DNA of 64,000 bases, from positions 20,274,001 through 20,338,000 of the forward strand of contig NC_135761.1 of NCBI RefSeq assembly GCF_052425735.1. Reading direction: 5' to 3'. This DNA comes from Oculina patagonica (taxonomy: Eukaryota). Within the stretch, counting starts at the first letter, position 1; the number at the start of each line of letters is the position of its first letter. The position numbers and the translations under genes were made by a program. This document shows, one piece after another, positions 24,579 through 64,000 of this stretch. The notes under the pieces were generated by a model. It saw only the letters and a list, made by a program, of their open reading frames with translations, was not told the DNA's origin and did no database searches.

Positions 24579-25160
24579 GCAATTTGTCATAACCCCGTCA
24601 TCCCGGTATTTAAGAGAGTGTTTTGCGCATACGGAGTGCTAAAGGAGATCAAGTCGGATAATGGACTGCCATTCAACAGCCATAAAAAGTGACACTCGGA
24701 TGAGCGAAGGACAACGGTAACGTGAAGCGGTTTATACAGAGAGAAAAAAAAAAGACTGCTCCGCTGCGGGAAAAGTGCACAGGGAACGTAGAGCATATTG
24801 GACAACTTAAGATCCAACTGTTGGAGTTACATCCCATGGGTCAATAGACAACCTAAGCATTAGGATGGTCCATAATCATGACCTAGAAAAGAAATACGCC
24901 GACAAAAGAAGACATGTTACATTTTTTTTTGCTACGAGTCACTTACTCAGAAATCGCCTTCGTTTTGTATCCAACGGTATCGAAGTCGAAAGGAGATCTC
25001 GAATTGAACTCATGGCCGGCATTCTTATTGGTTTATGCTAGACTGGTCGCGTTGTTACAAAACGGACTTGTCACTGCGCAATTACCAAATGACAACACGC
25101 TACAAAACAAAACAACATTTATTTCCATATTGTAGCTGGGCGCGCAATACAGGGTACTGT

Positions 25161-28148
25161 TCATAGCATGTTTGCCTTAATCCAGTAGTACAGTTTAGCA
25201 ATGTTAGTGTACACGCCGTAATACTGCCCAGCGCAGCCCCATCCCCAGCTGGTCGTGCCCACGAGATACCAGCGGTCGTCCTTCTCACAAACAAGAGGAC
25301 CTGGTAGAGATAAAAAAGAGCATGTTGTTGCAAGTTACTGTAGTACTGGCCTCGTAATCGCCTGCGCCAACCCTGCCGCGTGTTCGTCGAGATAGGCGGC
25401 TACAATTGCAAGCTAAAACGAAACAAGGAAGCGGCAACGACTACGGGGAAAAGATGACCACGCCCTCGTGAGCTCCTCCTCCTCTTGAACGCTGCATAGT
25501 ATCGATAAAATTTTCTCTTGATATGCGAGGAAGACAAAAAGGGGCTTAGCTACCGTATACTTGTTACACTGTTCGACTAGGTACATCAGCTTAAGCTGGG
25601 TTGATAAGTAATTCTCGGCTCAGTCATTTATCAGCTCAAATAATTTTCGAAACTGCAAAGTGAGCTGCAGTGTGCACTAAAAATTGAGCTGCAGTTTTCC
25701 TAAATGTACGCTCGCGCTCCCCTTTCTTGAGCTACTTTTGTGAATGTCTGTTCAGGATGGTGCAAGTCAAACGTGTATAACTTCGCAACAACATATTTAA
25801 GAGTTTTGTTGCTTTACCTTTCCTGACACTTCTGCAATTTTCCTAACATATTATATAGTGTGTTTGAGTTAACGTTTGACAACGATAGCAATCGGCTCTT
25901 TAAGAACCAAAACCTTTCCCAAGAAATCTCAGTTGAAGTCTGTGGATTAAATCTTAGTGTGAGCAGTACTTTTATGTGATGTTGTTTTTAAAACTTCACA
26001 AAAAGTTTTTTTTTCAATTTTGAATGTTGGTGCTCTTGCAAGTGAAAGAGTTTTATCCAATAAGAGAACAGTTTATTTATGATATATTTGAGAGCATCAC
26101 TTTTACCTCCACTATCCCCCTGACAGGCGTCAATTCCTCCTCCTGAGAACCCAGCACAGATCATATTGGATGTTATGAGCTCAGGTCTGTAGTTCTGCTT
26201 GCAGTTCTCGTCCGAGATTATGGGGACACTTGCCTCTCTTAAAACAGGAGATGTACTGCCACCTTGACGGGTGCGACCCCACCCTGTGATGTAGCATGGT
26301 GTCCCTGTGCAAGTCGAACCATACAATGACATTAATGAACCGAAGACGTTTCGCCAAACAGCATACCTTAAAGTTTTCATGCCATATTTGAATTTCCAGT
26401 ATAGTGTGAGCTTAATTATGAAAAGAGAGTGACTTCATTTTTAAACTTTAAAAAATGTAAGCACAGCCATCCTCGCCTGGATTTTTAATAAAGAATCCTC
26501 CGCCACGTTTTTTTTGGTTTGAATAGTTTTTCAACAATCAGCACTTAGGTGTGCCGGAATGAGAATTCGCACTCATCTGAAATTCATTGCCAGGCAATAA
26601 AGGTCAGCGATGATCTAGCCTTGACAAGGGTCTTTGGTTCAAGGAGCCGCCATCTTGGAATTAACCGCCAGCGGAGATCCTCGGTACGAGGTTGCTGCGA
26701 CCTTGTCCCCAGGGCGCTTTTCCCGTCAAAAGTGGAAAGGGCCACTTTCGAAGGGAAAAGTACCCTGGGGACGAAGTTGAGGCTGCTATCGCTGGTGCAA
26801 ACAGTCAAAGAGGGCGAGACATGTTGGTGAAAAAAGATAAGAGCTGAATTCTAGTTTTTGCAACCGTGCAAGCAAACTAGTCTCGGAAGGATTTTCTCAG
26901 AAGGTTTAACGACACACGTACCTGGTGGGAAATCAGCATAACTGCTTTGCAGGCACGCTGGTCCCACGCGACTATTGAATTTGGCGGGAGACGCCAGCTT
27001 GATGACAGCAATGTCACGATCATGAGTAGCCGCTACTCCGTACGAGCGATGCGTGTACGCAGCGGCAATATCAATGTCTTGCTCGTAACCTTCAGTGGTT
27101 TCAAAGTGGTGCTCACCAAGGCGAACCTGTGATAAAATAAACACATGGACAGATTGTGTTAGTACTGTATCTGAATTTCGTCCCTACCCTATATTTGGAT
27201 GCCCCACAGCTAGGTTTAACGAGTCGGTTTACAAATTCTCATTTCATAAGTCTACCAGCGCGACATGAGAATATCTGTAGTTGTTAACTCTAAAAACATC
27301 ATAGGTCCCCTTTAAGGAATAGGTTTTGTTGTCAAGAACTAAAACTTGCATGTAGTACCCTTACAGAGAGAAGGGAAAGGACCTATTTAGAGAGAGACTT
27401 GATTTTTGTGGTATGTTGCAGGCCTCAACGAGTAAGGTAATTCACGGTAAAAAAATGTATAAGCCTTGACGTGATCCAAGCAATAACAGTCTATAACAGT
27501 CACTTTAAATTCTCTCCAAAAGCAACAAAACATTCTTGCACGCTCAATGTTATTCTTTCCGGTCATGCTATCTGGAGAAGAATGGAGTACCTTTGTTGAC
27601 ATATGTTATCCTATAAATGAGAAATGGGACCTTGATGGGAAGCTGTTATGAAAATCGTGCGAAGATTGTTCGAAGAATGCTCAAACGTTTCCGATTATTT
27701 TTCCCGAAGATTACCGAGGACTTACGAGTGTTGTTGCAACCGTTCTTTTGGCAAGTCAGTTGCAGCTTGCGAGGAAGCAAAGAGTGTTGCGTGACAACCT
27801 GCAAAGAAGGATACTTCGAGAGAGAGAGGAAAGTGTAACGCAATCAGTGTCGAGACACAATACCCACCTTGTAGTCCTTGATAAAAGTGTCGATACTGGA
27901 GGGGATGCAGTGTGCAGCTGTTACCACGTGGTACGCGGAGACCAAAGTTCCTCCACAGTCTTGAGACTTACAAGTCTTACACATGATAGCAACTTGCCAA
28001 GGCCACGCCCCTGGGGTTGCGACCTTTCCTCCTACGATTTGACCGACGCTCAAACCGGCAACTGAGCGGTTGGTCACCTTCACGCCACAGGAGACCGGAG
28101 GAGGGGGAGTGGTCGTAGGGGGATCGGTCAAAGGATCCCTCGCTAGAG
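25161..28148 (-). CDS. Trypsin-like serine protease domain exons (part of the dual-protease gene)
   Basis: SCG linker, [33 protein letters not shown] (Asp at the S1 pocket position), SWGWGC, GVYT, stop TGA at 25163-25161. Confidence 0.95.
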
Positions 28149-31100
28149 CTGTATAAGGAAACAGACATTCCAAAACACTTGTGAATAAAAGAAAATAAAA
28201 ATGTTTGTGTATTGGATGAGACGGATTATATCTGTTAGAACAGTATTCTAATGACTGTCGTAATAAAGTCAATAAACACGTGACCAATCAAGAGTTTATA
28301 ACGCATTAAGTCACTGCAAAGCGCGGGAAAACGTGCAACCGGTACCAAGCGAGGGAAACGCATATATAGGTACAAGCCAATTGAAGTCCCGTTTGATAGT
28401 GTTTTTTGCAACTCCTGATTGGTTGATCAGTAAGGTAGCATGATTTCTCTGAGTTGAAGTGCATTACATCAGCATTTTTAACCAATCACAGATTTCCAGA
28501 CGGTCGGAAACCTCTCAAACAGATTAACATAAAGGTCGGTTTAACTAACCTGGTTTACAAATGAAGGGTTACGGGTGCGTGCACCGCTTGCCTATCCAGT
28601 CAAAAAAAGCGAGAGAAACAATAGCCACGCGAACGCTTGAGGGCGAGAGTGTTCTTGCGGCTTTTTTTTTCTCGCTTTTCGCTTGACACGCTAAGGGAAA
28701 AGAGGGTCTGCTCAATTCTATAACGTAAGCGAAGAGAAGTTGATCTATAAGCTGCTTTCATCACAGATTGATCTGTTGTGGACTGATTAGTATGGTTACT
28801 GGAAACTGACTAACTTCGCATTGGCGATTAGTGTAATAAGGTTGCTTGGTAACCATGGGACTCATGGGAGAATTCAAAAAATATGTATTAGTGACCTTAA
28901 ACTCACCGATCTCGCATATGAACGGGTGTTGTCTAGCAAAAACCCCTGTACATGCAGTATCCAACCAGCCACCACTATATCTGTACATCTCCACACAGTC
29001 TTCATTACCAAACAGGTTGTTGGGCTCATTGCTGGTCCACTGGGTGTACGTGAGTGGTTCCCCGTTATCCCAACGCGAAAATGCGCCTGAAGCGTCTCGA
29101 CGAAGTCCAATCCAAACCGCGTAGTCCCCGGTAAGCTGAGAAGTCATGCTCTTGATGAAGTTATGTTCTTTAGCGTCGTTAATGGCGACGAGAGTTCCGC
29201 CATGTTGTTGGCAGCGAGCTTTTGCGGCGTACCAGAAAATTTTTTCATTGAATGCCTTGTAGCAGGATGTGCCAAATTTATTCCAGCCTGGTGAGCAGGT
29301 TACTTCTGTAAAAGATTCATACGACATGAGTTTACGGAAACTAACCTAAAGTTTATTCCTCTGAAATGGAACCTGTCCTGAGATTTTTGTCCAACTTTGC
29401 CTATTAGTTAAGCCTGGTTTTCACTAGCGACGCAAGCACAAGCGCAAGCACAAGCGGAATCACGCAAAAAGGACAAATTTTGATCCTTGTGCTTGTGCTT
29501 GCGGCAAGCACAAGCAGAAGCATCGAAATACAGTGCGCTGGTGCTTTTGCTTGCGTCGAAGCCGTTTTCACGGTAAAATAAGAGCGGTTATCCTTGCGCT
29601 TGTGCTTGCGTCGCTAGTGAAAACCAGGCTTTATTTATCTTAAAGGAAGTTTAATTTTGAAATAAAAATATGTTAGGAAGCAACAACACCTTGTTTATAC
29701 CCAATAATTCTTACACTCTGAGTGTATAGTAAAGTTATGTAGATCTGTCGTCCTCGTTCAATAGGAGGAGGCCTTGCTATAATAAGAACATGAGTAAAGT
29801 GCACTTAATGGAATAAAACGCATATTAATGAGAGGATGTTGTCCAAGATTCTGCAATACTGAGAAATCCAATTTTTTAATACTTGCCTTCTATCTTCGTT
29901 GCAGGAATGATTGTTGTTGTAGTCAGTGACATGGGCGTGGTGGGTGCAGGGGGCTGAGCTGCAACACATTTGCCAGGGATCAGTCTGATCTCGTCCAGTG
30001 CTATGTCACTTCTATACCCGCTACCACGGACAGCTTCAAACACAACCTGTGTTAGAATAAGACAAAAATGACATCAATCGAACTGATGACGGTTTTCACT
30101 AGTGGATAACTAGCTTACTCTCGAATCTCCTGGCAGAGGTGAAACGATAAGATAACACAAACGTTAGGATTAGCTGCATCCAGATTAAGTGTCTAGGAGT
30201 GTTGCTAATGATAATCCATTGCAGATTAAACCCCAGCATTTTCGCCCCAACAGTTCGTTGGTACCCACATTTATAGTAGCTAGTGCCTTACCCTACTAAA
30301 CCATTATGATTTATCACTCAAGGAAGAAAAAATCCTCCAGGGGGTGGGGTGGTACTCCATGTAAAAGCCGTATGGGTATGTGCAGTACCGTTGGATTGAG
30401 AAAATGAGTTTACCGATTTTCAGTGATTATATTCTTGGAATTAAAATTTATTTATTGTAGCAAATGTAACCGTTTTGTATTAGAAGAAAGAACAGGTACG
30501 GGTTAGGTAAGTCTTCAGCAGGGGCTAAAGACCCTGCCCGGGCCCCTTCTATTAAAAGACCGGCTCCCGATGTTCAGGAAGTGATTGACAGTAGCAGGAG
30601 CGAGTTGGTAATGGGCTTCCGATTTTGGCTTCCCTTTGCATGGAGTGCCAGTGCAATGAAGGTAGTTCCCCAGACTTATTCATATGTTGCTTCTAAACAG
30701 TTGGTCGTGAGATTTACGTGTTCCGTTCATGACAAGAGTAGACAGAGTACACTGACACAAGAAATCCCGCAAGGGCTCGACCCAGGCCTCTTGATCCATT
30801 GGGCCACTACGCTAATCAAAATGAGACTACTTATGGCCTCAACTCTTTTCGTTATTTTGCATCTAAGGCCTGGAACTCCTTACCTAATAATTCACTATTG
30901 GATGAGAACCTGTGAAAAACCTGTGAAAAACCTGTGAAAAAGCATGTGACACAGAAACACCCTCTGAAAAAACATGTGAATTTTGCAAGGGCTAAATTTT
31001 GTCCAAAAATCACAAAATTTAGTACCTGTGAAAAAACCTGTGAATTTTAGGACCTGTGAAAAAACCTGTGAAAAAATATGTGAACAAAATATGAAAAAAA

Positions 31101-34100
31101 TTCACTTTTAAAACCTGTGAATAGACCTGTGAATTAACCTCTGAAGAAATAACATTAAAAATCTCTCAACAAACATGTGAAAAAACCTTTCAAAATTAAT
31201 AATCAATTAATTTAACTATCAAGGAGTGTTATTGTAAAAACAGTATAAAAGTCTGCCAACATAATTTAACACAAAAATGTACAAATGGACAAACATACAG
31301 TTGAAAGCCAGGTCACAAGACTTGCAAGATTTCATCAGGCCACACCTGACTCTATCTTTTGTAAGGACTAGACAGGTCAAACAATTGAATATTTTGTTTG
31401 CTTGTGTGCTATTGTGCCACAATTAAAGTCAAATTACATGTATGAGTGGGTTTGTAATACCAACTAGGGCTCAAAATAACGGCCAGTCAACGGACAATGT
31501 CCGGCCAAGATGATAAATCATTTGTCCAGACAGATGTTCAGTTCAGTTTGCCAGTCATTTTGACCAGTCATGCACTGGACCAGAAAAATTTGTTATACCA
31601 ATTCGTAATTCTAACAACCTTTTTAACATATTTTGCTTAATATGAAGTATCAGAAAACTCTACAAGAATCCAGGGAGGGGAGGGGGGGGGGTGGGGCACT
31701 CAAAAAAGTTTTATACGGGGAGGCTCCGCCCTAAGTTCTAACCCCTTTAAATATACCATTTTTGACAGAAATTGTACCCCTTTTGTATACCTTTAACTGA
31801 AAAAGGTACCCCTTTCATATACCTAAGAGAATGGCGTGGACTTAAAATAAGACGTTTTCTTGTCATTTTTATGTAGCGCTTAATAAATTAAAATAATACA
31901 GCCATAAATTGCGTCTGTTTGAAATATTTTAAATAAAGGCCCTTTTAAATAGCCAAATGACAGATTTCCATACCCTTTCATATACTTAAACTAGTGAAAT
32001 CCCTACCCTTTTATATACCTGAAGCCTAAAAAAGGTACCCCTTTCGGGCGGAGCCTCCCCGTATAGGCCATTATAGGGAGTACCCCCCCCCCCCCCTGGT
32101 ACAAGAGCCGTGTAGGTTTGTTCAAGTCAGTACTATACTTCAATATTATGCGAAATGTCAACAAAAAGAACGTGCATGAAGAAATATTTGAAGTTGGTAA
32201 ACAGGTATTTCATTCAAAAAAGGTGAAACAACGTGAAAGATGACTGAATTTTGTCTCAGGTAATTGACTTGTTGTTATCGCATCCTAAAAGGGTATTGAG
32301 AAAACACAGGGAATAAAAATGGAAAGAAAGCAAAGCAACAAATTTAAAATGGTTGCACCCGCCTACATGATCCAGACTTTGACTTCTTTACGCACTTTTG
32401 AGTTCAAATAATAATGGAATAAATCCCTTAAATTCAATGGTGTAACATATAATATGCTCAGACATCTTGCTCACCGTCTGCTGCATTTTCCCTTCAGGGC
32501 TTGGATTTTTTTGCATGTATATGAATGACATAATCTCATAGGGGGAAAAGGTGTGTACATGTGTAGGGCTGAAACCAGTCCAGAAAATTCTATCCCAGGA
32601 CAAAAAATATGTACATGGAAATGCTCAGTGTTTTTCACATGTACTCATCATCTGAGTACATTGTAGTATTGGCATGCTACATGTATGTTCCGTTAAAGAA
32701 AAAACAAAGCGGCAAACAAAAAACATAATAAACCAAAACCTTGTGAATTGTAAAGGTGACACTTAGTTGCACTTGCTTGCTAAAAAAATAAAACAATGAG
32801 TAATGAATGGTACAGCAACAAAGTGTGCAAGATAACCTTTCTTTGCAAAATCTTGCTGTCAGTGTTTGTTTGTTTGTTTGTATACTGTTCTGGGTAACTC
32901 TATGCCGGTACTCAAAACAAAATCAGAGCAGATCTGCTCAAAGTTTATACAGGGCTCGAAATTAAAAAGAAATGAAGTTCCCACCTGGCACCTAAGTGGT
33001 AAGAAACGTTGCTAAATTGTGAAAACAAACAGATACTAGTTCACAAGTGTTTAAAAATCATTTGTACTAGTAGAATTTAATTAATAAAGGACAGACTATG
33101 TTAATATTAGAAAAGAAACTATCAAACAAGTAAGTGTTCTATTGCTAGAACTCCATGTTTAGCCTCGATTTAGCCTGGTTATAAATTGTCAGTATTCAAG
33201 GGTGTGCAAAGGATCATGGGGCGATTCAAACAAGGTCGGCCATTTGCAAGTTTTTCCGATGCAAGAGAATCTTTTACAGCTAAGGAAAAGGATGAATTTA
33301 CTTCTTTTCTTATTTGAATGTTCTAGAAACAAAGATCTTCCAATGTAACTTTCTGGATGGGCAAAATGGCTGAGAAAGTGACTGTTATTCATCTTCAACA
33401 CAAAGAAAAATAGTCGCCATTTCGGCGACTAAACCAAAACTTTTAGTCGCCAAGGATGAAACGTTTATCGCACTGGAAACCATATCAGTCAAAACTTCGA
33501 GCCCTGAGTAAAACAGATAAGTACAAGCTTCTTCATACCACTGGTGTCAGCTTCTTTGCTTCCAGTTTTCGGATTCCAAATCACTTCAATCCAAGGTTTC
33601 ATTGTCTTTTTCGACACTCCAAATGTTGTCTAAATGTCCTCTTCATTTTTGCGTTAGGTGGGGAAAGATAGTTTTCATATTAAAAATGCACCTTCGTTGT
33701 GCCTTCGGATTAACTCTCCTTTCCAGAGGAAGAAGAACTGGAATAATTTCGCCGTCACTCCATCTCCATATTGTATTTTGTAAAACTTGACAAGAACTTA
33801 GTAACCCCTCGTTTATGCGACCACGACAAAAGTACAGCGGTGTTCTTAAAAGCATGCTCAGTTGGGGTGGCAGCCGCGTTTTTTGGCGGGCTTTTTACCG
33901 CCAAATCGTGAAGAGAATCAACTCATTTCTTCAAGCTGTTTTGCCGGATTCTTGCTGCCTTGAAAATGAAAAATGTAGTGCACAAAATCTCACCCACGTG
34001 CACGGAGTTCAAGAAATATCGGGAAAGGAATTCTTGGTATAAAGATGAAGGTAAGCGACTTTTCTTGTATAGATACAGGCCAGTAGGCTAGCGCTGGGAA

Positions 34101-37100
34101 CACCTTTGCGCTCGGACTGTGAGCTTTTTATAAATGTAAATAAGCTTAAGTTAACCTTAACTTTCAAGCTGATTTTTTTTAACAACCTGTACAAATAATA
34201 CTTTGTTTTTTTACCCTATCAAATGTTTATCCATTGGCAGTGCGTGTACTGAGAATGTACATGTGTATAATTTGCCCTGCCACTCATGATCAGTCAGTAC
34301 AGCCTGGGGATTAGTTTTACGAGCAAAATCGTTGCACCTTATTCGATTGTATTTTACATTGTAATCCTAGCAAGGGCACTGCAGTTTTAAGATCTTTTAT
34401 AATTCTTTTCAGCAAAGATCAACGAAGCACCACGGCTGAACAAAAAATCGGCAAATTCTGCAGTGTTATAATCTGGGAAGCGGTTTCACTGTTGCGAGGA
34501 CAACAATAACTAGGTATTGGTGAAAGACTGAATGAAAAATTTGTGGTGTATTTTATTGTATGCCAGATGAAAACTTTGCACTATATTAACACAAATAAAT
34601 ATCATGGCGCCTGATTTTCAATGTGAAATAGTTGAATAATTCTTAAACAGATGTATGTCTTCCATTGTTAACACTACGGTTTTTATATCCCTGAGCACAT
34701 TGTTACACATGTTTATGTGTATGTACAAGCTTTTCCTTAAATGAAGTTTTTGTAGAACAAGCTTTATTAGTTGATTTCAATCAATCTAGTTTTTTTATTC
34801 CATTTGTTTAGAAATCACCCCTAGTCCAGTTCTTGAAAGATGGAATTTGGAAGACTTACTTCCATATTAATGTTATGGCTAAAGACAATGAGAAAGTTGA
34901 TAAATATAAAGACAGCATCACTTCAAGCACAGTTCGCAAAACAACAACAGCAATCAAAAGACCAAGCCAGCAACCATGTGAACTGAATATCAACGAGTCT
35001 GAAGATGATGAAGCTAGCTTAAACAAGACAATGATGAGTTAAAAAGAAACCCAGAGGAAATTTGACAAACTAAAGGTAAGCTTATGTGTACTGCTGCAGT
35101 AGCTACTGCATGTAATTAGTACCAGTACCTCCAACCCAGCATTTGTACATCAAGTATAAGCCCACAGTGAGTCAAACAAGTCCAGTGATGCAGACTCAAC
35201 TGAATCAACCATTTTTTTAAACTCGCCCGCACTAAAAAGGGATTCTTAAACAGTTGAATTGATTTGCTAGACTTCAAATTATCTTCAAGATGCATTTTGT
35301 TAAAAAACAATCACATCACATGATGTTCTAGAACCACCATGAACTAAGAGGAGGGGCAGGTGGCTATGCGCACAAGAATGGCTTTCTCTATCTTATTAAC
35401 ATGGGGCAAAAGCATTCCTGCTTATCAGGCCAGCTGGGGATAATTGGAAGAATTCTGAGCCCAAGATGCACTTGTTAAGTGGTACATTGGCTGTCTAAAT
35501 GTACGATTGATGGGGATCCTCTTATGTAATAAGCTAAGTACATAGTCATATAATAAAAAAAATGATTTTATTTTTTTATAGGTTGCATTTCTACCTGCTA
35601 TTTGTAATTTAGTAGTTATTAATGATTAACTTTTCATCAACTGTCCATAATTTGTATAATTGCTTTATTTGTAGATAGTAGAACTCATCCCAGGTTCACA
35701 TGGGTATGTTTATGCCAACATGTTTTGGCCATGCTGGCCTCCAGATGAGCATAAGGTTCTGGCTGTACAGTATTCCTGCTGAATGCTTTTTACACAAATG
35801 AGGAATTAAATGGAGCAAATGGCAAATTGCTAATAATTACTGATCCACACATTTTAAATAAGCATCTGGTAAGCATAAATTTAGAGATCTACAAGTTTAT
35901 AACTTAGTCTGATTGCCATTAATTAACTTAATACCCTAATGAATGCTGCATTCAATTGATTTGTCACTTCGTTTTTACCCATTTTCTATGCCACTCGATT
36001 TACAAGCAGTACAGAAAAATACAAGCACCATTGAACATTTGCAAGACCATTACAGCATTGCAATAACATTAACACAATGATGAGTGATGAGTGTCAAAAG
36101 TACATGTAGTTTGAAAAGCTTTGATTTATACTTAGTAACTTGTTTTAATGTCTGTTTTATTGATTTAAAATAGGATTTACATTGAAGAGGACAGGGATGC
36201 ACTAAATCTACCATCAAGATAAGTCTCTGAAACAAACTTACCACACTTGACTGCCATAAAGGAATTTTATATGGAACTAGCTGAGCTCTTTATTCTTTTG
36301 AAAACCTCACCTGGCCATATACAGCCTATAGTGTTAGAAGATACTTAGTTTTCTCTTTATGTACTTAACTTTCTCTTTTTAAAACATCTGGTGTTGAAAA
36401 GGTTTCTACTTGACTTTTCCATTACTGGTTATAATAAATCATTGAATATTGTTGAATCTAGATGTTTATTTATTTCTAATACTTATCACCGAGGCTGACG
36501 ATGTATACTTTTAAGTCTGTTCTCCCAGTGGAATACATAATGGGTTGTCCTAACTCCCGAAATGCCAGAAACCCGAAATGCCGGAAATCCAGATAAGAAA
36601 GCCCGGAATCCTAAAACCCAGAATGACCTTTTTGCGTACGCCTTTTTCAAGATAAATACGTGGAAATATGTTATATTTTTGGGAAATTGGAAGTTTGTTA
36701 CGAGTTGCCATTTACGTTGCGAGTTATTGAATCAAATTGTCAATTTCGATACAAAGTTCTCAACTTCGGCCCAGCTGAAATTCGCAATTCGCTAGTTGAG
36801 GAGAAACAAAACATGTTGTTTCAAAGTCATGGCGATATCTGAACTCCATAATTTTAAAGGAAACAAGTTGCGGCGGGAATATTCCAGCGATTCTTGCCGC
36901 TCAAGTTGAAAATCGAAAATCACAGTCCGGCTGTATTTTATTTACTGCGCCTCAGCGGTATTATTAAATTTGCTGTGCATTTTCGTTGTTAGTTTTAAAA
37001 TTTGTTTCTTTTCACACTTTCTTCAATAATCATCTTTAAAACTGGTTCCTTGTTTCTCAGATTTTGCCAAGGTACATCGACAAAATTTTAAAAACTCAAA

Positions 37101-40100: not shown

Positions 40101-43100
40101 CTGACATGACTTGACAGACATGATTCGATTTACTTCAGTTACGTTGTGTAAACGTCTCACTCGTCTCCGCATTTATATCATATGCGAAGTAACAAACAAG
40201 CTTGCTATTGAAAGCTGCAACATGCGTTATGATCAGTTATATAAAACGCCAACTCGAGTGAACTACCGGTATATCGATTTCTCACAATGATTACACATTG
40301 AAACATGACTGTTTTACTTTTCACTCCCCGGGGGGAGGGGGGTACTCAAAAAAGTTTTGTACGGGGAGGCTCCGCCCGGAGATCCAACCCCTTACCCTTT
40401 TATATACCATTTTGATAGAAAAAGGTACCCCTTTTGTATACCTTTTATTGCAAAAAGGCACCCCTTTCATATACCTACACGACATCACATTTACCTAAAA
40501 CGGGAAGTTTTCTTGTTATTTTTATGTAGCGCTTAATAAATTAAAACGATACAGCCAAAAGTTGCGTCTGCTCGAAATATATGATATAAAGGCCTTTTAA
40601 AATAACATCATGGCAGATTTCCCTACCCTTTCATATACCTAAACTTGTACCCCTTTCGGGCGGAGCCTCCCCGTATTTTATAGGGAGTACCCCCCCCCCC
40701 CCTGTTTCACTTCTTGTTCACCGTCTCACTTTATAGTAAAAGCCACTGGATTACTCAGTGTGATACAAATATGAGATACACGCAAAGGCCGGTCGCAAAG
40801 GAGTCACAGTGAGAATGGAACAATACAAATACTATAAAATATGATAGCGCGTCCAGAAAGATTACCACCAAAGATTTTTCAACGGAGAAATAATGATTAC
40901 CCTTGAACCATTTTTTAAATGAATGAAGTGATCCTTGCAGCGTGCTGAAAGACTTTATGTAATCGCGTTCAAATTTCAACCGGTGCTGAAAGTGAGCTTA
41001 CGGATGAGCATTGATGGTTTTTAACGAAAGAAAATGGCTGCCCGATTAGTTTTCAGTTTTAAAAGTGTTCAACCAAGGCTGAAATTCGCCATATAATCGC
41101 AACAAAATTCTAGCCCGGCAAATCGAGCTGAAATTTAAGCCCGAGCTGAAATTCGCCATGTACTCAGGACCTAAGCCGTCGCATATTTTAGCCTGAAAAA
41201 ATCAAAGCTACAACGGGATTTAAACCCATTATTTTGAATCATTTTTCTTACCAATTCTCGAGAAGTCAGCCGTGGGTCCTGTACTGGGGGTGCTACTTGT
41301 GGTCCCCTTGTTTAGAGACCAGTCGAAATCATCACTGTTGTCTTGAGTAAAGCCACACAACGAGTTTCCGTCAAAGTTGCAATACACTGAAACGTAAAAG
41401 TAAGTACCTATGAGCCCGCGTGTCCGCATGTCATGTGTTCGATCGAGGAAAAAAATCATAAACCTACCCCAAAGGCAAAGTTTCTCAAGAGTCTTCGATT
41501 TTTCCGCTGTCTTGTAATTAAAAAAAGCTCATTGTTACCCCCACCCCGCTATTGTCTCCGTTACTGGATCCCCTTTCTTGCTGGTGACTTTGTGCAACAG
41601 AGCTTCGCGCAAACGGCTGCGTTATCCTTGTAATCAAAAGGTGGTAGTTTTTTTCTTAATCCCATTTACAATGTGATGCAAAGAAAAGCGACGTGATGTT
41701 ATTGTCGTGTTGGTAACCATAACGTCATCATTTAGTGAACACTGATTCTCGAAACGTTTCTGGAATATTCATTGTCAAAACCTCCCCACCCTACCACAGA
41801 ACGTACCTTGCTTGGCTGCTGGAGTAGGAGGAGGAGGAGGAGGAGGGGGAGTGGTGACCACAAATTGGTTACAGTCTCCTGGTGTTAATTTGATTTCGTC
41901 CAGCGCGATATCTCCAGTGTATCCCAGGCCTCTCTCAGCTTCAAATACGATCTGAGATGATAATGTTATGTAAACAAGGCATAAGATAAGAAACTACAAG
42001 AGATGCAGTAAATCGACGTTGGATAGAAAAGAAAAAAAAGAAAGCATAAATTATACCCTTAAAAAATAAAGTAAAACAATGACGGTCAGTTGTTAAACAG
42101 GAACTAAACAAATTACAGCAGACTTATGGTTTATTTTAAAAATGTCTCGTAAAATTGCAAAAATACAAGTTTGAACTCTATTCCACCTATACTTCTCTTA
42201 AAATAATTAACAGATGCACTTATAATAAATTGCTATGCAGAACAAACCTTACCAAACTAGCGTACATTGTACAATTTGACACTAGGTATTCTGAACTAAA
42301 TAATGACCCAAAAACGTGCATTTTCATTGTGGCAAACTAATGCATGTCTTTTGGGGAAAATAAAAGATATTATAGCAATTAGGAGTAAGAGAGAGCAACC
42401 ATCTGGTTCAAACCCAAATGGGGGCGCAACTCCACCGGGGGGGGGGGGGACTCCCATATCGAAGGGACGGGAACGTTCGTCGGAAAATTTGAATCAAGCC
42501 CCTAAAGACAACCAATCTGGTCGTGTCTCAAGCTTTGGACCGCAACTATTTCCGAGCTTGTTGAAGATCTAAAGTTTAATTTAGCCATTATTTTGATCCC
42601 TGTTATAGTATTTAAAGAAATCCCTCTTTTGCATAGTTCACCTGGTAAGGTTGAACGCCACGAATAGCAGCTTTGGCAGTAAACCATGTATTTCCTTGGT
42701 TACCGCTGTACGATCCTAGCAACGTCGCTTGTGAGCCCACAAGCACATAAATTCGTAACGTTCCCATATCAGCACCGTACATGTGAAAGTAGAACTGAAG
42801 ACAGTAGTCACCAGTCAGTGTGGGCGAGAAGAGATGCGCGCGATCCTTGAATTGACGCGGAAATGACGCTTCAGCGTAGATGTAGTAACCTGAATGGTGC
42901 ACAAAAGACAGAATTGCAGGGGCTATGTCACGGGATTTAAGGTAATTTTATTTATTTTCTTTATTTAAGAGCTCTAAACTTCAAATTGGCAGAGCAAAAG
43001 TCTTTTATTGGCAAAATCACGGCCACATGACAAACAAGAATGATTTTCGAGCACTGTAAATGGCACTTTCATACAAATTGAGAAAAACTTGAAATATGTC

Positions 43101-46100
43101 GGGCCGACGTTTTTCAAGTTTACCCGAACGCAATCTGTTTTAATCTTCGCGAATTTTGCCCACCCATACCCCTTTTTGGCCTTTCTGTGTTTCTTTTTCC
43201 TGTTTTAAGCCGTTTTTGTGATATTTCAGTTAATTCAATGACCATTTGGTCAGTGCCGAAATTGCCTAAAATTGCGTGACATAGCCCCTTTAAAAACATG
43301 AGCCACCTTTGTTGGTCGCGGGCTTTTTACAGTCCACCGCCAGCGAGGGACTAAAAATTTCATACTGATAACGTGGCACTACAGAGATTCGGGCAGTGTC
43401 GCTGATTCTTTGTTACGCGCACGTGAATTTCGCACCTGGTCAACAATCAACTGGAGAGCTACGTCACCAGCATGAAGTTTTGAAGCAAAATCTTAGATGC
43501 CCCTCGGAACGGACAGGAAATAAGCGCGCCGGGCAATTCGAACAACTTTTCCTCAGAATATTTTTTTTACGCAATAAGTTTCTTAATGTATCACAAACAG
43601 TCAGAATAATCAATTTTCACAAGGGAAGATTTTCGTTTTCATTAAGGTGCAGTCAAACAGAAGAAAAGCAATTCAGGGCATAAGCCGTAACACTTTTGAA
43701 AATTCCTCAAACGGTGTTGTACATATACAAACAATAAAAGAACTAAAATCCGTTTAGCTCATGTTTTGTTGACAATAGAATGTTTGAAAACTAATTTTAA
43801 CCGGAGGTAAACTTCTATTAACGTGAACGTTATTATTGCTGTGCAATATTGGCCCAGCTGACTGATGTCTCTCATTATTGTATTAAATTTACTACTGAAC
43901 AGGTTTATCGTACAAGAGATTCTTCCAATCGCTGACCTGTGTTGGAGACATCATTACTTGGCCCAGTGTCCGGCGCGCTTGATGTGGTTCCCTTGTTGAA
44001 CAGCCAGTCGAACTCGTCACCAGTTCCCTGAGTGAATTGACACAAAGACTGGGCATCGAAGTTGCAGTACACTAGGAAATGACGAAGGCCTAAGGTCAGT
44101 TTCAGAATTTTCATGTCTGGGTTTTTTCTGTGACCTTACCTTCCGCCCTTCCTCAGATCCCCAATTTTCCATATCAATGTTGTTAATGTCTTAATCTAAA
44201 CTTTAGCCTCCACATTACTTCCGAGAACATGACTCACCAAAAAAACAAAACTTTATCCCTCTCCCCCTCCCTCCAAAAAAAGAAACCCAACTGTAATCGC
44301 CAATTTAAAACCACTAAAGTTCTTCGCACCGCCCCCGGGTGGTTACACTTTTGGGTGTTTTGCATCATATGGCTGATGTAACAAATCTTCTGCAATGACC
44401 GTCGAAAACAGTCCCCCATTCGAGCTTTCGCATTTTCAATGTCAAACTTCGACTAATTCGACATCAAAAAATGTTCTCTTAATTGTTAGCATGAGTGATG
44501 TAATGAAGAACGCCTCCTCACCTTCACCGCTACTAGGTGGGATGGGCGTAGTAATTGGTCCGACCGGGATCGGTGTGGTGACTGGCGGAGCAGGGGTTGT
44601 TGTCGGGTCTTCACATTTCCCTGGGGTTAGTTTAATTTCGTCCAACGCGATATCACTTTGATAACCACTTCCGCGAGTAGCCTCAAATTCAATCTAGCAA
44701 TGAGATATACTATTAGAAAATTGATGTAGTTTGTACTCTTAGCGTTTGGTCTACTAACGTTTTAATCCATGTCATTAAGTACAAAATCTGTCACACCTAT
44801 GAAGGCATTTTACAATTTCAACTACGTCTCTTACTACACGCTTAGCAAATGTGTCTCCACGACACAATTTTCCTTTGCGAGGCCAAGGCCATGCGCTTAT
44901 CCATATATATTTACATATAGAAAATACAGATTGGTTGTTTGGTTCTTTTTTTTTTTTTAAAGTGCACTTAAAAAGTAAATTTCTTTAACTTGTTTCACCT
45001 AGAAACATGTGCCTCCCTTGTTGAATAGCCAGTTGAAATATGTCGGTTAGTTTTTTAAAACCAAATTAAGCCAGAGCAGATTATTAGTAGCGGCTCCAAT
45101 TTCAGTTTTATACGTTGTTCTTTACCGAAACTTAGAAGAAAAAATCGTTGTTGAACAAGAGGAATAAACTTTTTTTTCCAATCCGTGAGCTTTTAACAAC
45201 TGGTAACCTGCAAACAAGCTCTTCTTTGTGTTTCACTGACAAAAAAAAGGGAAGAAGGGCCTCGCTGTAGGTTACACAATTAGTGCCCGGTCACTTAACC
45301 GTTTGTTGCTCCCCCTTTAGAGACCGTTGGCCCTTATTGCCGTTGCGTCGCATTTTATCTGCTACTTATCGGAGGCTGGATTTCCTGCCGATAAATATGC
45401 TTGTTTGTCAACTCAACCGAATAAACGTTTTGTCATCACATTTTTTCTAAACATTTTGTGATCACCTGAAACTGCTCTGGACCTGTAAGTGACGTCTGCG
45501 CCATATACCACCGGTCTCCTTGGTTACCGTTGATAGAAAATACCTCGGTTCTGCTCGAAGCTGTATTCTTGTGCGCCTTTAGAGAGCCCATGGACGTGCC
45601 AAGCATGTGAAAATGAAAACGAAGGCAGTAAGGTCCCGTCAGCCGGGGTGACATCAAAACGGCCCTATCACCTTGTACACGTGGCCTAGATGTTTCCGCG
45701 TAAACGTACAAACCTGTGAAAATAACGAAATGGTTGTTTATTTCATTGTTAAGTTATTTTTTGTAAAAAAATCCTCTAAGTTGTCGTGATGGACCAGGTA
45801 GTCACTGACTCAGTGAGTGATGTTTATATGTCACACCAATCAGATTGGGGCTAGGAGGTATTCACCTATTAGCTAGCCTGCGAAAACAGCCGCCTCTCAC
45901 GCTCCGATCCGCTGTTTTCGCAGGCTACCTATTAGCCTTATTTCGCCATTCCCAGGATGTGCACTTTATGTAGATTACCGCGAGGAGTTTGTGTGTGAAT
46001 TTGAAGCCGAAAAGCGTTCTGAATTCGTCATACTGGCGTAAGATCGTAGTCTTTGACATATACCAGCATCTGATCAAGGCTCTGGTGTTTTTGGCGTGGA

Positions 46101-49100
46101 ACACATGTTGTAACGCGCTTTATTCGGTGATTAGAAGACTTAAGGTGTCCATTCTTTGACAGGACAGACAGGATCGCGTGTTACAGCTAAGGTGTAAGGT
46201 AATTTAGGGTTAATGCAGAACAAGTGCCAACTTGCGATCCAGCTTTACGATTTATCAATAATGATTTCTTTCATGTGCTTTTGTCAAACATTAGAGTCCT
46301 TCACATAATACTTACAATTTGAGCAGAAATACTTGCTTTTGTAGACCTTGGTTAACAATTAATTTCGAAAATAATAACGGGACCTGTTTTTTACACTTTT
46401 GGGTTCCCTCTAGTTAATGATTTTAATTTATTCTCATTATCTGTCTGTTTGAGAACAGATTAACAGTGTAAAGAAAAATCGATGTTGATCACCTTTTCCA
46501 GACATATCTGTTCTCGGCCCAGTCCCTCCGCTTGAGGTGGGGCCTTGGTGGACGGTCCAGTCAAAGTCGTCTCCAGTACCTTGATAGAACTCGCACAGTG
46601 AACCGGTGTCAAAACTGCAATACACTGTCGAAAGTGAAAGTGTCAGCAATGCACTTAAAACACGTTAAGATTAATGTAACTGGCTCTTTGCTGGTGTGAA
46701 ACGCGTTATTAAAAATACAGGATATTTTTTGCAGGATATTTCAGATATTACAAGTACTTTTGCACTGAAATATCGCAGCGTGTGTTTTGAGCCAAGGTGA
46801 CCGAGCAAACAGGCGCATTCAAATTCTAAAGTACTGAGTGACTGATAATCTCACTATTCCGCCTGTATTGAGACAACGAAAACGAATACAATTGTGAAAT
46901 TTACCAACAATAAAATTGTGCGAGCGTCAACTAGTGCTATTTTGGCAGAAAAAAAAAACGTGGTAACCATCTTCGTTTTACACTTTAAAAGTAGAGTGCT
47001 TTGCAGAGTGCTGGAGTAATGGCCAGCTAACCATCTTTCACAGCTCGGATCTTTAGAACCGGAATCCAGTGCACTAACCACTAACTCACAATTCACAAAT
47101 GAATCAAAATTACTCACCCACAGAATTTTCATCTGGTCCAGGTACAACCGGCTCTAGAAAGAAACCAGTAATTTTTGTTAGTTTTGTTTCAGCTTTATAG
47201 TAATCTCTGTAACTTTGGTGCAGCCTAGCCAAGTTATCTACACCGCCGGAGTTATTCGTGACATAACTGTTACTAGAGCAGTTTTCAATTGAGTGTCGTA
47301 ACACCAAAACCAAAGTAATTACTCTGGCCAATCAGAAACGACATTGACAATCCAGTGAACCAATCAAAACTCGAAGCAAAAACATGAAGCTGACGCGAAG
47401 CGCGGGAAAACGTGCGCGAGCGAGTCACGATTGGTTTTGGTTTTAGTTCTGATTGGTCGAGAAAGTGGCGCGAGATTTTTAAACCAATCACTGAGCGTAG
47501 CAATGCAAAACCAAAGCAAACGCAATTTACTTTCGACACTCAAGTGAAAACCGCTCTATTTCCTTTGGATGGGATGGCAGTCCAACGCAGGTTTTCACCA
47601 AGCATTTTGTCTGTAGAGGATTTTTTTTCGCGCACGTTGAATACTTCAGCGGCCGAAGGCTGTCGCCATAAACCGCGCAAGAAAAACCTCTGGCACCCAG
47701 GGTATAGCTGGTACACATTTATACACTTGAGTGGAGAGAGGCACTGCCAGAATAAAGTTGTTTGCCCAACAACATAACACAATGGCAAGGCCAGGGCTCT
47801 AACCCGGACCACTTTATCCAGCATCTAATCATAGTTAATATAGGGAAATGGTTAGGAAGCCCGGCAAACATCAAAGGAGCAAACAAAGAGGCCAAGATTT
47901 ATGTTGGAAGGTCCACGACCCTGCACATCTTTTGTTTTGCGCTCATACACTATGCATGAATTACGTAATCGCAATGTTTTTATTGGTTAGTTACATGAAC
48001 ACACGTAACCACCTATTGTATTTTGTCAGGTTTTGTGTAGGGTCAACCCACAAAATAGCGAACAAAAACATACAACAAAGAACTTTGTCGGGATTCCTAA
48101 CCATTTCCCTCTATTAACTATGATCTAATTCATTAACCATTTGATAACCGCGCCTTCCGCCATCTGTTTCAGTCTTAGTCACAAAGATAAGTATGTCTTG
48201 GTACCTGGAATCTGTCTGCAATGGACAAGTATCCCATCCGGGAGGGAGTAGAAATACTCCTAGGTACTTTCATGCTACTGAAACCGGGATAAACTCCGGC
48301 CTGATGGAAGACTAAACCTAACCTACCTACCTGGTATCTGTGCTGCTTATAGGTAAATTTCAATAAATCTTTATTTTCTCTTTTCCTCAAGTTTCAAATC
48401 CTCTAATCCCTCATCCTGTTCGTTCTTCATAAGCATCTTAAAAAGTATCAAAAAGTTCTCAAGAAAATGTTGCTGGACGTTCTACTACAAACCACTGACG
48501 ACATTTTAAGTTTGGGTAAAACCTCAGGAGAAAACGGCAGACAAGTGCTAAAACGTATGATAAACGTTGATCTGCATGTCGCAAAGTTCACATATCGGCA
48601 TGCATAAATAATCGTGTTATATTTTTCAACTACCGCCTAGCCGGAGCGAGGCGTGGAAACGAGAATTAGGTGTTAGTAAAAATTTAAATAAGGACGCTAT
48701 CAGTTGCAATGGTCGCTATTAGGAGCAACGGACGCTATCAGTAGCAAAGGACGCTTTTCACTAGAAGCTACTAGAAGTTCGAACTAAAGGGATTTTATTG
48801 AACCAGAAAACACAAATTGTAAGTACATTTGTTTCGAATTCACGTTTATAAGAAAGCTTGTACAAACAGTGACTTGCGTATTTCGAATATAGTAATTGCA
48901 GTTGACTATGACTTCGATTCACTACTATGGATCAAGTGTAGTGCAAATAAAATTCAGAGTTCTTTAAATCCCTGGTGTATCTTCAATAAAAGTACAGACG
49001 AGAGCGCGAAACAAACGTTATATTCAGGTATAAGCCCCCCAGCCCTCACCCCCCAAGTATAACTTACTTGTCGGACACTTGTACAACTTGTTTATCTGGC

Positions 49101-52100
49101 GAACGTCGTTAGCGCTAAACCCCTTCCGCTGACCCATTTGATTGGCGCTACTCTTCAGTCCAACGATGGTAGATCGGCCATTTCTGCTGAAGGCTTTTGG
49201 TCCATAATGCATTATGCTTCCATAGTCGTAAGATTCGCCAAGATGTTGGATCTGTCCTTGACCGAATTTGTCGAAGTTGCTTTCTTTGCCTAGTGGAACA
49301 AAAAAAACCACAATGTCTAAGTGCTGTTTCGGTTAGGCTAATAAATTCTTCATCATTTGCTCTTTCATATTTAAACAGTATCAAAAAACAAATTCGTTTT
49401 CATACGTTTGTTTTTCAAAACCTCAGCCAAAACAGAGTGGCAAGTCCACGCAAGCCGCGCAAACGTTGAAACATGAACTTGCGTAGAGACTTGCGTTGTA
49501 TGGCCAGTGGGAATTTGGTCGCAAGCAGTCGGAATTCCCAAAAAAGTCATTTCAAACTTCAGAGCCAGATGCGTCCTGCCCTTGGAAAAACGTGTGTGTG
49601 ATGTGAAATTAATCACAGTTGGATTAAATTTCGTTTCTGATTGGTTGAAAGACAATATGTCTGTTCTGATTGGTTAAGGCACTTTTTAACATTGGAGAAC
49701 TAAGCCAACGCAAACCTATACAAGGCAAGCGCAATATTACATTCAACATTCGGTCATGCAGTATGGGGAAGTTGGGCAAATTTGGAAATGAAGCTGACGA
49801 TTTCGAGCGATAGCTCATCGTCGTAGCGATTATGTGAGAGGATTGTAGGGGTAGCGTTAGTATAGTAAACTAAGGAGTTATGCTATTGGCTAATGAAGGA
49901 ATATGGCAAGCCTCCTCTTACCCAGTTCAATGTTTTCGTACAGGACCTTGACGTAACTATCTCTGTCCGTTCGTGACTGCTCGTGGAAGAAGCCAATAGC
50001 GTGCGCTAGCTCGTGGATGACAATCCCCTTGTACCAGCAGTATCTGTGAAGGTTTACCTTCTGCTCTCCGCGTGCTGTGCGACCCACAGATGATGAGCAC
50101 CTGTCAATCACCATAAACCGTAAGTTAATTAACTTATCATGTCTTATCATGGATATAAGGGAGGGATGGGAGGGGAGGGGTTTTGGAAGGGAGTGAGGTT
50201 GCGTGATCGGTTAATGGGAGGAGTCTCAACAAGAGCAATGTAATTACGAAAGACATGAGGTGTTAAAAAATTGACTGTACATATTTGATGCAGTGAAGTG
50301 ACATCTTTTACATCACAAACGTGTCAGTTTACGGGTCTAAACTCCAAGGCGATCGAAATAGCAAGCATGTCTAATACTCACTGCGTGTTCAAGTCGTTAA
50401 AGCAAATTTAAGTGCCTCGTACGAGTCGTACAATAAGGTTTACCATTTGCACAATTGGTTCAAGTGGTAAATGTGATACTTTTCAGTCAAATAAAATGTC
50501 ATTTTACGTAAACAGTGGCCAATGTTGACACATTCAACTGGTACAACTCACGCGACTCGTGCAACTGGTGAAACTGCACCTCATTATATGCACTTGGAAT
50601 TATAATGGCGGAATTGTACAGCTAAATCTATTCCAGACACTATTAAAATATATATTGAGCATCAGTTCCACATCCGATCTAAAACACTCAGTTTGCAATG
50701 CTTTTGAATGATAAAAAGTACACTATATTGGCCCACCATTGCACGCCCCTGTACTGTATTGCCGACCAACTGTGGCTTACCCATCACCGTTTGTGAACTT
50801 GATATAGTTTTTCTGAGTGGTCCTGGCGACAAATTTCACGCAGGTCAGCTTATGATAATCCGCAATAGCGTCATTGATCGCTTGAACGCCAGCTTTTTCT
50901 GTGGATGTCGAAAAGCAAAAACAAACAAAACATAAATCAAACATTTTGTTGTATATGAAAGTGGTATAGTTTCTCTCCTGGTAAGTGTAGAATTAGTGTG
51001 TTCCTTATATTATATTTAACATTTTCGCGTTGCGAAACACTATTTTTAACCGGGGTTGACAACAAATGAATTGAATGCGGCTTCAATACTGAATCCTGAG
51101 ACACACGAAATGTACACCAATGTCTGAGAATAAGATACTCAAACGCAGTCTAAGTAGGGATGTGACATCCCCTACCCTATGCGCCGTTTCAGATTAACTG
51201 TTCCAGGCCTACTCACCAATGTTTCTATCTATGACATAAGGCACGGTGTTGCTTGGCCACAGACCGTGCGGGTGTGTGATGGCATTGCGGGAGTTTGGGT
51301 CTTGTGTTATAAACCTCAGAGTCTCGACGTCGGAGATGATATCTCCCAGGAGTATACCGGCACCAGTGTTGCCTAAAACTAAAAGTTAGAAATGTTTTTT
51401 TTTGTGATGAACAAGATTAAATGTTTAAATTCCTGAGGAAGAAAAACAACAAAGATGTTTTAATGAAGCAAATAGGAACAAGGACGTTTAGATACGAGAA
51501 GATTGGTGCAGAATGTTAACTTTAAGTTAGAGATATCCGCAAATCCCTTCTTTACGAATTTCCTGAGCCCGCGAGCCTTTACGATGGCGGCATAGTAACG
51601 TGTGTATCCTCATAGCAACAGGCTGACGAAAACAGGTTTTTTAGTTATGTTTTTATGTCATTTCTGATTTACCAATGAGCAATGAAAATTGCTCATTCAT
51701 ACCTCCATATGCTTCACATTCATTTATACCATCGCTAGGACACCAATTCATATTATTTGGCTCATTCTGCGGCGTTAGAGTGATTTTTACTTGAGTATTG
51801 AAAGTAATTCGCATTTGCTTTAATTTTAAAAACCCCGCCATTTTTACGACCAATCATATGTAGAACCAAAAACGATCATGACTCGCTCACACGCGTTTTC
51901 CCGCGCTTCACGCGGGCTACATGTATTTGCTTCGAGTTTTGATTATATCACTGGATTGTGCTGGAGAAATTTCTTTGGTTTTGGTTTTAAAACACTTTAA
52001 AATCGAAAGCCGCTATAAAGAGGAGTTGCGAATTATAAACTTATCTGTATGTTACGTAAGGAAAGTTGGCGTACTATACCTGTGCATTCTCAAGTTGTGT

Positions 52101-63669: not shown

Positions 63670-64000
63670 CTGCAGAGCGAAGCCAAAACAGTTAGTATAA
63701 AAACAAGTCTTCTAACACCGAAGATTTCAATTGTACAGTGATCACGGGGTTTCATTATTTACAGCAGCTGAAAGACCTTCAGCTTTCCGTGAGGATTAAA
63801 ATCGGCTGTTAGCACTGAAACAACAATTCAGTAAAGTGACCTTTAAATTTAAAAGGTCATATGCTATTATTATTGCGTATTTCCTGTTGACTGATCTTTA
63901 AATGATTTGGATGGCGCGGATTGACTGAACGGAACCTTGAAGACGCTCAAAACAGCTCAATTTTCAAACTGCTTGGCCCATAGTTTTCAGTTTTACCCTC

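Follow-up and report, generated by a model that had tools for sequence, protein, structure and literature searches.

Introduction

Meprins are astacin metalloproteases that carry MAM domains and whose pro-peptide, ending in Arg, is removed by trypsin-like serine proteases, including kallikrein-related peptidases and plasmin (PMC3573791). The relation runs in both directions, in that meprin also cuts a pro-kallikrein near its activation site (PMC3573791, PMC3186203). In that system, however, the astacin and the kallikrein are separate gene products, and the cut in proKLK7 is made at G|DKII, before Asp and two residues upstream of the mature end (PMC3186203). Here we describe a stony-coral gene in which an astacin domain and a trypsin-type domain lie on one chain, and in which the activation bond of the trypsin-type domain is X|Ile. 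The gene is located on the minus strand of a 64,000-nucleotide stretch of the Oculina patagonica genome (RefSeq assembly GCF_052425735.1, contig NC_135761.1, positions 20,274,001 to 20,338,000), which is referred to below as the window and is numbered from its first letter.

The best solved matches to the coral protease domain are TMPRSS2, enteropeptidase and plasmin (E ~1e-51), which have in common with it the Asp189 pocket, the linker Cys and the Ile at which the catalytic chain starts; a MAM domain is present in enteropeptidase as well. In these enzymes P1 is Arg or Lys and the activation linker is short, whereas the coral linker is ~9 residues longer, contains a sequon and ends in a P1 that varies and is mostly non-basic. 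The coral astacin domain has BMP1/tolloid as its nearest solved relatives (E ~1e-43), and the GQR arginine of the S1' pocket is present in both. BMP1 has a vicinal Cys pair and CUB and EGF domains and is activated at a furin-type site, whereas in the coral protein that place is taken by a single Cys, the astacin is combined with MAM, lectin and trypsin domains, and the junction is monobasic or RxR. Another mosaic zymogen, Factor C of horseshoe crabs, carries a lectin-like domain. This trypsin-type zymogen combines a pattern-recognition domain with an activation site, F|I, that is non-basic and is cut autocatalytically (PMC11836539). Unlike the variable coral residue, the P1 of Factor C is a conserved Phe, and Factor C has no metalloprotease domain.

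Proteins that combine trypsin and astacin domains reportedly arose in Cnidaria (PMC6767649), and an association of the two has been reported for helminth astacins (PMC9848320); the parts of these reports that list the architectures do not discuss activation sites. While the astacin-trypsin architecture is already known, we did not find described a conserved fusion with a non-tryptic, variable trypsin activation bond. A literature search returned no description of an astacin-MAM-lectin-trypsin protein in corals, and NCBI lists the members as uncharacterized or hypothetical proteins.

Corals carry hundreds of extracellular proteases, and to our knowledge almost nothing has been established about how these enzymes are switched on. 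The gene described here provides a clean case: it is conserved, transcribed and single copy, and its trypsin zymogen has given up the tryptic bond while the 49 readable nearest paralogs keep a basic P1. The chain also carries a second protease, whose own activation bond is tryptic. The question is what class of enzyme sets off a coral protease relay and whether such a relay is wired inside one molecule.

Results and Discussion

Gln at the trypsin-type activation site

In an exon model derived from splice sites, both activation-site motifs sit in one 22-exon gene on the minus strand, from ~63755 to 25164. The encoded architecture is a signal peptide, a long pro-region, an astacin domain, three MAM domains, a C-type lectin domain and an S1 protease domain, and Pfam recognizes Astacin, MAM, Lectin_C and Trypsin on separate exons. 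The predicted product is a mosaic zymogen of stony corals that would be secreted and in which both catalytic domains are intact.

The protease is the C-terminal domain, beginning ~980 residues into the chain, and there is no two-residue pro-peptide right after the signal peptide. Its activation site reads SVGQ (28050-28039, with Gln encoded by CAA at 28041-28039), followed directly by IVGG (28038-28027). Since SVGQ and IVGG lie inside one exon (28148-27868), the Q-IVGG junction is not a splice artefact. In alignments, the catalytic chains of TMPRSS2, enteropeptidase, trypsin and plasma kallikrein start at coral Ile981. The same first protease exon encodes the linker Cys (VSCGVK, 28095-28078), an N-x-S sequon (28074-28063), a CKTC motif (27981-27970) and His57 (TAAHC, 27921-27907). 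The second protease exon (26922 to 27126) contains Asp102 (DRDIA, 27021-27007), the third (26107 to 26304) contains Asp189, Asp194 and Ser195 (DACQGDSGG, 26131-26105), and the last (25164 to 25300) contains Gly216 (SWGWGC, 25250-25233), Gly226 (YGVY, 25220-25209) and the stop codon. Asp189, Gly216 and Gly226 align with those of TMPRSS2, and the His57/Asp102/Ser195 triad and Asp194 are all present. The trypsin-type S1 pocket and the Gln at P1, both of which had been put forward in the original prediction, are therefore borne out: the protein departs from a trypsin-type zymogen in having Gln, not Arg or Lys, before Ile16 and agrees with it in the other trypsin-type S1 features.

Four sequencing runs were compared with positions 24900-30100 of the window (5201 letters). 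No run has a listed difference at the CAA codon, and one RNA-like contig (X14) is the same as the window over 27866-28148, with zero differences. An assembly error as the source of Gln was ruled out, as the RNA-like contigs carry CAA. Spliced RNA-like contigs from three of the runs reproduce the exon joints 25300/26107, 26304/26922, 27126/27868, 28148/28907 and 29305/29887; the last of these (29887/29305) is a GC-AG intron with the donor AAG|GCAAGT, which the spliced contigs from three runs confirm. Two orthologous proteins, P0018 (1398 aa, on a 4378-base contig) and P0152 (1357 aa, on a 4262-base contig), are encoded by uninterrupted open reading frames on contigs from RNA runs, which places the astacin and trypsin domains on one mRNA.

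We then compared this P1 residue with that of related proteases. Among the 51 nearest same-genome trypsin-like first exons, P1 is basic in all 49 that are readable (Arg in 47, Lys in 2). Because all 49 carry Arg or Lys, Gln at P1 is exceptional and not a matter of chance. P1 is likewise basic in 81% of 276 related trypsin domains from many animals, with Gln in 3. Coral MAM-trypsin paralogs and the same-genome paralogs keep a basic P1 (Arg or Lys) and a short CGxRPxxR linker. The same holds for P0212, a second Oculina fusion of astacin and trypsin, whose sites are the canonical R|IVGG and R|VIGG. The Oculina genome has well over a hundred trypsin-like domains. The astacin-MAM-lectin-trypsin gene is single copy, and the next match to its first protease exon is 50% identical.

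The P0212 gene (C2, ~42.97 Mb) encodes an astacin domain with GQR and three trypsin-like domains and lies inside a cluster of trypsin-like genes (C2:42.88-43.0 Mb).

Variation of P1 among stony-coral orthologs

Orthologs were collected by a library-wide search with the first protease exon and by two word-seeded searches. They form 16 clusters, which are not independent species: five full-length proteins, one long partial protein and ten exon-sized fragments. The full-length proteins are P0153 (the window's own protein), P0018, P0151 (Montipora foliosa), P0152 and P0155 (Porites evermanni). The orthogroup, with astacin, three MAM, one or two lectin and trypsin domains, was found only in stony corals, all of its members being apparently stony coral. 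A further homolog search with the trypsin region of P0153, in which polyserases swamped the matches, added zero new orthologs.

P1 is Gln in 7 clusters, Val in 3, Glu in 2, Gly in 1, Lys in 2 and Arg in 1, so that a non-basic residue is found in 13 of the 16 and orthologs mostly carrying R-IVGG were not seen. The clusters with Lys or Arg are Porites evermanni P0155, P0156 and P0012. When positions are anchored at the scissile bond, the entropy of P1 (2.22 bits) is the highest of all positions from P8 to P48'. The surroundings of the bond are far more uniform: P2 is Gly in 14 clusters (0.67 bits), P1' is Ile in 15 (0.34 bits) and always Ile or Val, and the GGK at P3'-P5' is invariant (0 bits). 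A CG[VI][KR] basic site is also invariant, 13-17 residues upstream of the activation bond, and the linker of the orthogroup is ~9 residues longer than that of its short-linker relatives and carries the sequon. Taken together, the alignments show a trypsin domain that keeps everything needed for insertion of Ile16 and for an Asp189 pocket, while its activation loop has lengthened and its P1 has lost the basic residue and become variable.

A tree of the 16 sequences built with the P1 column left out requires at least 7 changes of P1 state, and Gln is found in both large groups. A recent CpG mutation of Arg (CGA to CAA) was ruled out as the origin of Gln, given its presence in both major ortholog groups, including Montipora foliosa. 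Across the Oculina-like clade, P1 is encoded by CAA, CAA, GAA, GGT, AAA and CAA. In one pair of sequences with a synonymous divergence (dS) of 0.076 (4 synonymous and 6 non-synonymous differences in 78 other codons), the P1 codon differs at all three bases. The first protease exon is under purifying selection, with a ratio of non-synonymous to synonymous divergence (dN/dS) of ~0.1-0.2 in the clade nearest to Oculina. P1 thus appears to be at least unconstrained and possibly diversifying, the sample being too small to separate the two.

Two further features of the first protease exon were noted. The Cys-x-x-Cys pair CKTC (CKNC in one ortholog), which we place in the 37-loop, stands just before the conserved Cys42; it is invariant in 16 of 16 orthologs, is absent from the same-genome paralogs examined, and may be an additional disulfide or, alternatively, a metal-binding site close to the prime side of the cleft. 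The N-x-S/T sequon is found in the lengthened activation linker of most orthologs (NRS, NRT, NLS, NET or NTS). A glycan, if attached there, could limit which protease reaches the activation bond.

The astacin domain and its activation junction

The pro/mature-junction exon of the astacin domain (51217 to 51378) contains LLGDII (51352-51335), a putative aspartate-switch-like motif conserved as [LM]GDII in the orthologs, and the DPNSR-NAI junction. DPNSR lies at 51301-51287 and NAI starts at 51286, the scissile bond falling between 51287 and 51286. The coral R61|N62 aligns with the mature N-termini of BMP1 and crayfish astacin and with G34|A35 of pro-astacin. The junction R|NAI is invariant in the five full-length proteins, where it is preceded by DPNSR or DPRGR and not by a furin R-x-x-R, and the description of DPNSR-NAI as a trypsin-type, non-furin junction is upheld by these alignments.

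Pfam assigns two exons of this region to Astacin (E = 1e-23 and 7e-22). The zinc-binding motif HEXXHXXGXXHE, including the family-specific Glu, is at 49980 to 50015, and the Met-turn SIMHY (49218-49204) and MGQRK (49137-49123) lie within 49123 to 49218. The zinc motif with the family Glu, the SxMHY Met-turn, the pro-segment and the homologous mature N-terminus are those of the astacin family. MGQRK aligns with the IGQR of BMP1 and TLL1, its Arg corresponding to BMP1 Arg182, and GQR is present in all five full-length orthologs. HEXXHXXGXXHE, SIMHY, GQR, His57, Asp102, Ser195, Asp189, Asp194, Gly216 and Gly226 are invariant in these five proteins.

In specificity profiling, an acidic P1' (Asp or Glu) was preferred by astacins with the GQR arginine and a small one (Gly, Ser or Ala) by those that lack it, namely crayfish astacin and LAST; Ile was favored by neither group (PMC3186203). 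Among the enzymes with this arginine is meprin alpha, whose specificity is broader than that of meprin beta (PMC3186203). The coral astacin falls in the GQR/K subgroup, which goes with a predicted preference for an acidic P1'. No conserved acidic residue that could serve as an astacin target was found in the activation linker among the orthologs, and the Oculina linker has zero acidic residues. Thus, as far as can be judged from sequence, the trypsin pocket matches R|NAI, while the predicted preference of the astacin for Asp/Glu or small residues mismatches X|Ile.

Activation of the two domains

The account that we tentatively favor, and that we would place somewhat short of an even chance, is a relay that runs one way on one lectin/MAM scaffold, from an outside protease indifferent to P1, to the trypsin domain, to the astacin domain. 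The trypsin domain would be switched on by an endoprotease that is blind to P1 and reads Ile or Val at P1', Gly at P2 and an aliphatic residue at P3. Indifference to P1 together with a fixed P1' Ile is what a metalloprotease reading the prime side would give, and the activator would most likely be a metalloprotease whose S1' pocket is hydrophobic (MMP- or thermolysin-like, MMP being matrix metalloprotease), rather than the astacin in the chain. A trypsin-like enzyme is most likely not the activator in most of these corals. The active trypsin domain, or another coral trypsin-like enzyme, would then strip the astacin pro-peptide at the invariant R|NAI, as happens with meprins. That the trypsin domain unlocks the astacin, as originally predicted, is therefore plausible, and it fits the invariant Asp189 pocket, the invariant R|NAI and the meprin precedent (PMC3573791), but the assignment is not specific in a genome with >100 trypsin-like domains.

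Several points weigh against such a one-way relay. P1 is stable inside some clades, being Val in one and Gln in another. The fragments were placed in the orthogroup by 58-86% identity and the shared CKTC motif alone, and the full-length orthologs number only five. The enzymes assigned to both activation bonds are all inferred from sequence, and an activator indifferent to P1 would be equally compatible with the in-chain astacin if the specificity of that domain departs from the family rule.

The last point bears directly on the original prediction, in which activation is reciprocal: the trypsin domain would cut R|NAI, the astacin of the same chain would cut X|IVGG, and the two would make up a self-contained positive-feedback switch, one that clustering through the lectin and MAM domains might trigger. 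We consider this unlikely. A metalloprotease reading the prime side would tolerate variation at P1, the astacin is inherited with the protease in every full-length ortholog along with the invariant R|NAI, and a two-way relation does exist between meprins and kallikreins (PMC3573791, PMC3186203). On the other hand, a GQR astacin is predicted to cut before Asp or Glu, as meprin does in proKLK7, whereas the P1' of the coral site is always Ile or Val and the Oculina linker offers no acidic residue; cutting of Q-I by the astacin is not supported by these data. Furthermore, in the three clusters whose P1 is basic (Lys or Arg), the site could be cut by an Asp189 enzyme such as the domain itself, allowing it to autoactivate without the astacin. 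Since these lineages could autoactivate, an obligatory mutual switch is not a conserved design, and the occurrence of Lys or Arg in them also indicates that lineages can revert to a self-cleavable site. No change in the astacin is visible in the lineages with Lys or Arg. The second Oculina fusion, P0212, retains its basic activation sites beside an astacin domain. A closed mutual loop would thus not be the likeliest logic.

It had also been predicted that a trypsin-type domain would not autoactivate at a non-basic P1. This was too strong, because Factor C does so at F|I, through its own autocatalytic serine protease activity (PMC11836539). By analogy, zymogens clustered on a surface through the lectin and MAM domains might be activated when the trypsin-type domain of one chain cuts the non-basic site of its neighbor, and the C-type lectin domain does lie directly upstream of the protease. 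However, F|I is kept in all canonical Factor C copies, whereas the coral P1 is Gln, Glu, Val, Gly, Lys or Arg, and one Asp189 pocket is unlikely to take all of these. The variability of P1 in itself argues against autoactivation in the coral protein, and we regard this route as improbable.

A more speculative proposal, and in our estimate a decidedly improbable one, is that P1 is under diversifying selection. The trypsin zymogen would then be a bait that is cut before Ile by foreign (microbial) metalloproteases while the lectin/MAM scaffold holds it on the microbes, and the freed trypsin would fire the tethered astacin. The Persephone protease of Drosophila has a bait region, and a coral protein of this kind, if the proposal is true, would be a one-molecule danger sensor with an analogous logic. 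The activation site, if P1 is positively selected, would be a candidate interface between coral and microbial proteases.

Dipeptidyl peptidase I activates granzymes and neutrophil proteases by trimming, and one such granule-protease pro-dipeptide is G-E before IIGG. A comparable route, independent of P1, would begin with an endoproteolytic cut further upstream, after which an exopeptidase would remove residues until Ile16 is exposed as the N-terminus and becomes buried. The P2-P1 pairs G-E, G-Q, G-K and S-R of the coral proteins resemble the granule-protease pro-dipeptides, and the invariant CG[VI][KR] basic site lies 13-17 residues upstream. However, the coral protease domain is internal rather than N-terminal, a conserved cut site at an even distance from Ile16 is lacking, and the conserved P2 Gly and aliphatic P3 are left unexplained. 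We know of no precedent for activation of a C-terminal domain by trimming and hold this route to be very unlikely. Least probable of all is that the trypsin domain is never cleaved where P1 is Gln, Glu, Val or Gly and serves as a single-chain enzyme or a binding module: a non-basic P1 and the loop sequon could shield the site, but I[IV]GGK, Asp194 and the whole catalytic apparatus are invariant, with purifying selection, in those very lineages, which would be hard to explain without N-terminal insertion.

Other features of the gene

The exon model is 100% identical to the NCBI protein P0153 (hypothetical protein ACROYT_G013067, partial, Oculina patagonica) over all shared exons, and the window contains no runs of N. 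Comparison with this protein mended the model by adding a 36-base mini-exon (47153-47118), moving the start of the pro-peptide exon to 51378 and adding upstream exons at 62376-62337 and 61010-60960. The span 27868-51372 given in the original prediction does hold the motifs, but the gene is wider (~63755 to 25164) and the pro-peptide exon begins at 51378 instead of 51372.

The probable first exon lies in an open reading frame at 63624 to 63755, which starts with the signal-peptide-like MKPRDH and resembles the N-termini of P0018 and P0151; it is absent from the partial NCBI model, and no in-frame junction to exon 2 was found with its strongest donor. An ATG at 52817 was ruled out as the start exon, as the NCBI protein and the orthologs put the upstream exons at 63755, 62376 and 61010. 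The pro-region exon at 62337 to 62376 (SLLPPPDGG...) matches the start of P0153, and that at 60960 to 61010 (DLKSITPDSDETHINQ) was placed by comparing the exon model with the NCBI protein. Downstream of the astacin exons, the mini-exon at 47118 to 47153 joins the astacin domain to the first MAM domain. Nine exons within 29887 to 46624, assigned by Pfam and the exon model, encode the three MAM domains, and the last of them (30046-29887) ends in the GC donor.

The C-type lectin exon is at 28907 to 29305 (Pfam Lectin_C E = 4e-21), with its joints seen in the spliced contigs. Two C-type lectin domains are present in P0018, P0151, P0152 and P0156, and one in Oculina and the Porites model. Contigs that splice 28907 straight to 28148 show that Oculina truly has just one lectin domain. 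In a run with another organism label (X20), a contig joins 28907 to 28129 instead of 28148, which may point to use of another acceptor or to a linker that differs between species.

Two introns have unusual contig coverage. In the ~225-base stretch 29408-29633, within the intron that separates the lectin exon from the last MAM exon, contig depth reaches thousands in all three RNA-like runs, compared with tens to a few hundred on exons. Numerous loose ends at both borders and numerous internal joints give this stretch the appearance of a highly repeated or highly transcribed element. In the intron upstream of the first protease exon, depth is raised to 160-300 over 28206-28379, and joints that go back 44 positions occur at 28358/28315, probably reflecting a short repeat.

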